A stretch of DNA of 64,000 nt from assembly GCF_000007005.1 (NCBI RefSeq), contig NC_002754.1. One strand, 5' to 3'. A program made the translations under genes and the position numbers. Of the stretch, positions 63,000 through 63,633 are shown one piece after another. Positions within the stretch are counted from its first letter, which is position 1. Each line of letters opens with the position of its first letter. The stretch comes from Saccharolobus solfataricus P2. GTDB lineage: Archaea; Thermoproteota; Thermoprotei_A; Sulfolobales; Sulfolobaceae. The notes beneath the pieces are model-generated. The model made no database searches. It was given only the letters and a program-made list of their open reading frames with translations, and was not told where the DNA came from.

Positions 63000-63584
63000 C
63001 TCTTCCTCTTCCTCTATAGGTTTTACGCAATCTAATTCTGCTAACTTATCAAATATCCTCTTTACTGCTTTAGACACTTCATCTTCTCTCTTCGCTCCAG
63101 TTATTACCATTTTACCACTGCTGAAAATTAGCAGGACAACTCTAGGATCATCCATTCTGAAAATTAGTCCTGGGAATTGTTCTGGTTCGTACATGTTATT
63201 TTCCAATAGGAATGCAGCTTTATCTAGATTAACGTTCACATGTAAGTTAGCTGATGCAACTATATTTTGGATTTGGATTTTAGGCTTGCCCACTATTTTT
63301 ATGCCATATTTTTTAAGCGTTTTTATTATCCTTTTTACAGCCTTTATTAGCTCCTCTGTACTTTTTGCACCTGTTACTACCATTTTACCAGATTTGAATA
63401 TCAAAGCTGTTACCTTAGGCTGTTCTAATCTAAATATTAGTCCCGGGAATTGATCTGGATCGTATTCTATGTTGGGGATACTTCTTTCCATAGCGTATAA
63501 ATCTAAACTCTGCTCTAACGTAACTGTTGCCACAATATTTTCTATATTTACAATGGGTTTATACGATACCGCTGAATTGGAGAT
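62988..63584 (-). CDS. tbp: TATA-binding protein; inferred start at ATC 63584 (198 aa), whereas the track start GTG 63533 truncates repeat 1
   Basis: Two TBP repeats ([18 protein letters not shown]); NIENIVAT lies upstream of GTG 63533; GGTGA SD 6 nt before ATC; in-frame TGA just upstream. Confidence 0.95.
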
Positions 63585-63633
63585 AAAAGATCACCTTAAA
63601 AACTTTTTGATTCTGCATTTATAAATCCCTCTT

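Follow-up and report, generated by a model that had tools for sequence, protein, structure and literature searches.

The closest described systems come from bacteria and eukaryotes. In bacterial infC, which encodes initiation factor IF3, and in E. coli pcnB, a conserved AUU codon of the isoleucine type (AUH) follows a Shine-Dalgarno motif and is read by the initiator tRNA, and the gene for TATA-binding protein (TBP), tbp, of Saccharolobus solfataricus P2 probably follows the same pattern with an AUC codon. The likeness to infC extends to the nature of the gene, central and dosage-sensitive, and to the presence in the same cell of a fidelity factor acting against codons of this kind, IF3 in the one case and aIF1 in the other. 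Unlike TBP, which is a transcription factor, the infC product is itself the discriminating factor, giving an autoregulatory loop. We know of no role for TBP in start-codon selection, and since it is not a start-codon fidelity factor, any regulatory loop at tbp would be indirect. In mechanism, the AUC start proposed for tbp has its closest counterpart in bacterial infC, whose AUU start is conserved.

A second parallel is offered by eukaryotic eIF1, with its AUG in poor context, and TEAD1 (TEF-1), with its AUU: these too are regulatory genes with a suboptimal start, their output is sensitive to the stringency of start selection, and a/eIF1 is the common fidelity factor. They differ in depending on scanning and Kozak context, whereas at tbp, with its very short leader, pairing of the Shine-Dalgarno motif would set the start. 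For archaea, natural starts other than AUG, GUG and UUG are, to our knowledge, very poorly documented.

The window, by which we mean the whole 64-kb stretch of S. solfataricus P2 DNA that was analysed, carries tbp (SSO0951) on its minus strand, with window position 63584 corresponding to P2 position 807,584 (AE006641.1, identical over 1.2 kb around the gene). Read from 63584, the coding sequence (62988..63584, minus strand) comprises 198 codons and a TAA stop at 62990-88. Its product is unambiguously TBP: the Pfam TBP family (PF00352) matches it in two repeats with an E value of 7.6e-66 and 218 bits against a cut-off of 22.9, the NCBIfam equivalog NF001592 gives 365 bits (cut-off 270) and aligns residues 7-198 with profile positions 3-194 of 194, and the S. 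acidocaldarius TBP structure (PDB 1mp9) matches at E = 1.9e-109.

On the 3' side, a convergent ORF for a BadF/BadG/BcrA/BcrD-type ATPase (62139-62999, plus strand, 286 aa, PF01869 E = 6e-20) shares 12 nt with the end of tbp. This neighbour is common to Saccharolobus and Sulfuracidifex, its place at the tbp loci of Sulfolobus, Acidianus and Metallosphaera being taken by DUF5622 and a convergent DUF373 gene. Upstream lies a co-directional gene for a calcineurin-like phosphoesterase (Metallophos; 63634-64000, minus strand), which runs off the end of the window (251 aa in relatives) and stops about 40 nt short of the Shine-Dalgarno motif of tbp. Every locus read has this gene on the upstream side apart from Metallosphaera, in which the 300 nt before tbp contain no called gene. 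The phosphoesterase gene and tbp may be co-transcribed, the Shine-Dalgarno motif then serving an internal cistron.

The region around the start reads, on the minus strand, TTTATAAA (63625-18), tgcagaatcaaaaagtttttaa, GGTGA (63595-91), tctttt and ATC (63584-82), followed in frame by the codons ATC TCC AAT TCA GCG GTA TCG TAT AAA CCC and then ATT GTA AAT ATA GAA AAT ATT GTG (63533-31) GCA ACA. The TBP frame is closed upstream by a TGA (63591..63593, minus strand) that overlaps the Shine-Dalgarno motif GGTGA (63591..63595, minus strand), and between this stop and the GTG encoding Val18 (63531..63533, minus strand) there is no in-frame ATG, GTG or TTG. That GTG, the first canonical codon in frame, was the start of the original 181-aa annotation, and the 181-aa form is the sole version of tbp in the list of the ORF tool. 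The initial annotation had pointed out that no usable canonical start precedes GTG 63533 and that the first beta-strand motif (VNIENIVAT) lies upstream of this GTG, had placed GGTGA 6 nt before an ATC at 63584, and had given an N-terminus (M)SNSAVSYKP for the resulting 198-aa protein. Reading of the frame and of the coordinates (63595-91 for the motif, 63584-82 for the proposed initiation codon, 63582..63584 on the minus strand) bore out the first two points. As for the N-terminus, the product from 63584 with methionine at position 1 is the same as a 198-aa database entry (P0144, UniRef/nr), and it matches the S. shibatae TBP of Swiss-Prot (Q55031.2), from which it differs by one residue.

The hexamer GGTGAT (63595-90) is complementary to AUCACC in the archaeal 16S rRNA 3' consensus, the comparison being with that consensus (AUCACCUCCU, from the review PMC7531240) and not with the 16S rRNA of this genome. 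We searched the whole 64-kb window for GGTGA followed after 3-9 nt by ATH (ATC, ATT or ATA) at the head of an ORF 80 codons or longer, where the upstream stop is no more than five codons away and no canonical start lies upstream, and tbp was the single site of its kind. For comparison, ATG, GTG or TTG ORFs of at least 80 codons, led by GGTGA and with a stop no more than 15 codons upstream, provided six sites in the window, at spacings of 5-7 nt. The 6-nt spacing at tbp is thus typical, because canonical GGTGA-led starts in the window keep the same distance. Judged on these patterns, the arrangement of GGTGA, 6 nt and ATC at tbp is more than chance. Around the start, the alignment fold predicted no conserved RNA base pairs, and the single-sequence fold was weaker than that of shuffled controls (z = +1.2).

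Public databases hold at least ten different N-termini for the tbp family (P0121-P0194), with forms of 166, 167, 175, 176, 177, 181, 182, 185, 187, 188, 192 and 198 aa, several of the NCBI forms beginning at different isoleucine codons (ATT, ATA, ATC) inside strand S1. The annotation is unstable because no canonical start exists. Two of the NCBI forms, of 188 aa (P0129) and 185 aa (P0128), are the window's own product, started at ATT 63554-52 (Ile11) and ATA 63545-43 (Ile14), respectively (both within 63543..63554, minus strand). Curated resources carry the longer N-terminus, in Swiss-Prot Q55031 for S. shibatae and in Q9UWN7/AAF18138 and PDB 1mp9 for S. acidocaldarius, where the protein (MIPDEIPYK) begins on an ATT; the NCBI PGAP pipeline likewise starts on the homologous ATC in Saccharolobus MAGs (L082-85) and on ATA in a Sulfolobus MAG (L081). 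So far as their records show, these TBP entries are annotations without stated experimental N-termini. The proposal of an AUC start is accordingly not new, because the 198-aa N-terminus already stands in curated resources. A literature search returned no paper that discusses the start codon of tbp, how widely the family conserves it or what it does, and turned up neither ribosome profiling nor N-terminome data for Sulfolobales.

The ATC is kept in all 11 other Saccharolobus assemblies that were read and in three metagenome contigs, the latter found with a search pattern that allowed any base (N) at the third codon position. Both the codon and its surroundings are unchanged in the P2 record and in two assemblies derived independently from reads (L091-93), in four S. 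islandicus-type assemblies (L106-109), in three genomes with the S. shibatae-type allele (L113-115) and in the three metagenome contigs, and no ATG variant occurs at the position homologous to 63584 in any of these Saccharolobus assemblies and metagenome contigs. ATC is also found in the next species (a Saccharolobus MAG and strain A20) and in Acidianus.

Across 19 Sulfolobaceae-type lineages we found a common layout: a TTTATAAA-type box, 21-25 nt, GGTG[A/G], 5-6 nt and ATH. An ATH codon occupies the start position in about 18 of the 19. It is ATC in Saccharolobus (P2, S. islandicus, the MAG and strain A20), Acidianus and lineage L003; ATT in Metallosphaera, L008 and S. acidocaldarius, where an ATA follows the ATT; and ATA in Stygiolobus, Sulfurisphaera, a Sulfolobus MAG, L006 and L010, and probably in Sulfuracidifex and L007. 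Only in strain HS-7 is the homologous codon an ATG (M-S-N-G versus I-S-N-S), and there it follows GGTGA by 4 nt. The initial annotation, which had proposed that TBP initiates at AUC 63584, had named ATC versus ATG in close relatives as a check; with ATC throughout the 11 other Saccharolobus assemblies and ATT or ATA in other genera, this comparative evidence supports the proposed AUC start.

The comparison between genera is informative about translation as well as about the start itself. At 4-fold degenerate sites of tbp, identity to the window is about 0.3 between genera, which is the random expectation. While these synonymous sites are saturated, GGTG is invariant across all lineages compared. 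The residues after the start are kept too: in S-N-S (codons 2-4), Ser2 is written TCC, TCT or TCA, Asn3 AAT or AAC, and Ser4 TCA, TCG or TCC, and in Y-K-P (codons 8-10), Lys9 is AAA or AAG and Pro10 is CCC, CCA or CCT. Because residues 2-10 are retained through synonymous changes at a distance where 4-fold sites are saturated, these codons are evidently translated.

As in the window, an in-frame stop lies 1-3 codons before the ATH in the Saccharolobus MAG, A20, Acidianus and Stygiolobus, and also in Metallosphaera, L008, S. acidocaldarius and Sulfurisphaera, and eight lineages besides the window likewise contain no in-frame ATG, GTG or TTG from the upstream stop to the conserved core of the protein. 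The stop directly adjoins the ATH in Acidianus (TGA ATC) and Stygiolobus (TAA ATA), so there is no in-frame translation from upstream in these two. In six lineages (L003, L006, L007, L010, L081 and L105), the GTG within GGTG[A/G] is in frame and open, and these may use a GUG start 2-3 codons upstream.

In Acidianus, the sequence before the start reads ATG GTG ATT TGA ATC (L002, L101) or TTG GTG ATT TGA ATC (L100). A mini-ORF of three codons (M-V-I-stop) thereby runs across the Shine-Dalgarno motif, with its TGA right against the ATC that starts tbp. Termination followed by reinitiation may underlie this layout, or it may be coincidental.

Beyond Sulfolobaceae, 70 further TBP loci of Thermoprotei were compared, and in nearly every one a conventional ATG, GTG or TTG precedes the first strand. 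One locus in a Desulfurococcales MAG (L012; CAYXRT010000016.1, ~1455-1520) has no canonical in-frame start between its upstream TGA and the first strand (ICVIERCLAIVLREPKPSIKI), and in its close relatives L011 and L014 an ATG is present (MSQLQLPEREPSIKI).

The TTTATAAA octamer upstream of tbp (63618..63625, minus strand) can be read directly as a TATA box, to which promoter geometry assigns its probable function, and a G-rich GAGGGA occupies the BRE position just upstream of it (63626-63631, minus strand). From the TATA geometry, transcription is predicted to start within AAGG (63594..63597, minus strand). The octamer ends 22 nt before the Shine-Dalgarno motif, and with +1 at G63595 it would cover positions -30 to -23. 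In S. solfataricus, BRE-TATA motifs have been sought at -42 to -19 from mapped start sites (PMC8448881). Since the tbp box falls inside that range, the mRNA probably begins at or just before the Shine-Dalgarno motif, and the 5' leader, by the same geometry, is probably about 10-13 nt long. The window's own genes offered too few clear cases to calibrate the TATA-to-start distance, and a bacterial promoter and terminator scan of the window is uninformative for an archaeon. An octamer of the form [C/T]TTATAA[A/G] stands 21-25 nt before GGTG[A/G] in 17 of the 19 lineages, HS-7 and L010 having no match.

In Stygiolobus, Sulfolobus sp., S. acidocaldarius and Sulfurisphaera (L004, L081, L086 and L087), the box at 21-25 nt is joined by a second one, a perfect TTTATAAA lying 9-10 nt before GGTG[A/G]. 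The geometry of this second box in the Stygiolobus/Sulfolobus/Sulfurisphaera clade would set transcription to start about at the ATA or ATT codon, and a leaderless isoform could result. Of the two boxes, the window carries the distal one only.

We consider the best explanation of the locus to be Shine-Dalgarno-guided initiation by the initiator tRNA on AUC 63584, yielding the 198-aa protein (M)SNSAVSYKP..., and assign it a probability of roughly 0.8. The mRNA, transcribed from the TTTATAAA box 22 nt upstream, would begin at or just before the Shine-Dalgarno motif, and the 3' end of the 16S rRNA would pair with GGUGAU (63595-90), thereby positioning the 30S subunit. The AUC would thus be placed in the P site, where initiator Met-tRNA would pair at the first two positions and be mismatched at the third base only, and the presumed use of the initiator tRNA would give TBP an N-terminal methionine. 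The drift of the third base of the start among C, T and A, with AT invariant, fits an initiator tRNA that reads the first two positions.

Initiation on AUC would be expected to be less efficient than on AUG, and to rely on the strong Shine-Dalgarno motif and on the stringency imposed by aIF1. The S. solfataricus aIF1 has been described as destabilising non-AUG initiation complexes in vitro (Hasenohrl 2009, as cited in PMC6237735 and PMC8211752). Since aIF1 disfavours non-AUG codons, use of the AUC should be either inefficient or specially favoured. Further points count against the AUC reading: with transcription starting where predicted, the mRNA would open almost directly with its Shine-Dalgarno motif, an uncommon arrangement; the six lineages with an open in-frame GTG in GGTG[A/G] may use that codon; and the NCBI pipeline picks other ATH codons for this tbp (the 185- and 188-aa forms).

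The alternative that survives best, though we regard it as unlikely, is a start further downstream, at GTG 63533 (181 aa), ATT 63554 (188 aa) or ATA 63545 (185 aa), with the codons upstream forming an untranslated leader. GTG 63533 is the sole canonical start, genome annotations carry the 181-, 188- and 185-aa forms, and a start at Ile11 would keep the entire Pfam TBP repeat. Initiation at the GTG, however, would lose five residues of strand S1 (VNIENIVAT): repeat 2 (IQIQNIVAS) has Gln104 at Pfam profile position 1, which by symmetry puts the beginning of the first repeat near Asn13, and the alignments with all solved TBPs set in at query residues 9-13, so a start at Val18 would cut into the strand. 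In a sister species whose protein is 95% identical (Saccharolobus sp. MAG, L001), the codons homologous to ATT 63554, ATA 63545 and GTG 63533 are GTT, GTA and GTT, and therefore none of the three can serve there, the first canonical codon in that MAG being the Met of YAMERS. None of the three candidates in the window has a Shine-Dalgarno motif upstream. The conservation of residues 2-10 through synonymous changes, across genera with saturated neutral sites, also speaks against an untranslated leader. On these grounds we rejected GTG 63533, ATT 63554 and ATA 63545 as starts of tbp.

Somewhat less probable still is 5'-end-dependent (leaderless) initiation, either at the AUC or at the GUG of GGUGA, the GGTGA then being kept as a promoter or initiator sequence and not for ribosome binding. 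Sulfolobus mRNAs are mostly leaderless, a prevalence that lends this alternative some weight, and the promoter geometry does set the transcription start about at GGTGA; in the Sulfolobus/Sulfurisphaera/Stygiolobus clade, the second TTTATAAA box 9-10 nt before the motif would even bring the start site to the ATA. Yet the GTG of GGTGA does not share the TBP frame in the window, L001, A20, Metallosphaera, L008, S. acidocaldarius and Sulfurisphaera, and is followed by a stop in Acidianus and Stygiolobus. Transcription starting at 63584 would place the single TATA box of the window, which lies 33 nt from the ATC, at -41 to -34 and thus off its usual position. Leaderless initiation, moreover, rests on codon-anticodon pairing alone, for which an AUC would be worse still.

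Recoding is very improbable. It would involve either a start at an out-of-frame ATG at 63618 with a +1 shift into the TBP frame, or readthrough of TGA 63593. The upstream ATG does exist, and its ORF of 19 codons (63559-63618, minus strand, ending at TAA 63561-59) overlaps the N-terminal codons of TBP. It nevertheless overlaps the TATA box, its A being the last TATA base, which puts it upstream of the predicted transcription start, and it is absent from L001 and A20 (L116), so the upstream ORF is probably not expressed or not meaningful. The intergenic region contains no canonical in-frame start ahead of the TGA, and the frame relation of the upstream sequence to TBP varies among genera. With the upstream ATG not conserved and the frame relation variable, frameshifting and readthrough were rejected.

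A sequencing error, or a strain-specific mutation of an ATG in a damaged or attenuated gene, has the oddity of the ATC codon as the sole point in its favour and is refuted by the ATC in all 11 other Saccharolobus assemblies and the three metagenome contigs and by the ATH in every other genus, which leaves it next to no probability.

Initiation at the AUC bears first on how the gene is represented. Most genome annotations mis-start tbp, with forms of 166 to 192 aa, and this affects proteomics databases, recombinant constructs and analyses of the TBP N-terminus. It also makes tbp a clean case of such a start, in an essential gene with a flanking stop, a strong Shine-Dalgarno motif, a natural AUC/AUU/AUA series and an ATG outgroup. 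Although not a new kind of system, tbp would be a ready substrate, in vivo and in vitro, for the study of aIF1-dependent start-codon fidelity.

The start of tbp further raises the question of whether translation sets the dosage of TBP. The hypothesis that the weak AUC start is a dosage-control device for TBP rests on the expected inefficiency of initiation on the AUC, which would cap TBP output, and on the expected sensitivity of that initiation to aIF1 and to Shine-Dalgarno strength. Some 14 independent lineages lack G at the third base, for which p is about 0.13 when G has its neutral frequency of 0.134; as this is not significant, selection against ATG is not proven. What the comparison of start codons does show is that an ATG at the tbp start has gone unfavoured for a very long time. 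We therefore put forward only tentatively, and with more doubt than belief, the stronger proposal that the AUH start has been a selected translational governor since the origin of Sulfolobaceae, and is more than an oddity that has been tolerated. A Shine-Dalgarno motif of maximal strength, coupled with a near-cognate codon, would tie TBP synthesis to the stringency controlled by aIF1. If true, such a governor would tie the capacity for transcription initiation to the state of the translation-initiation machinery, and would be an undescribed archaeal counterpart of the logic seen in infC, with its AUU start, and in eIF1, with its poor context.
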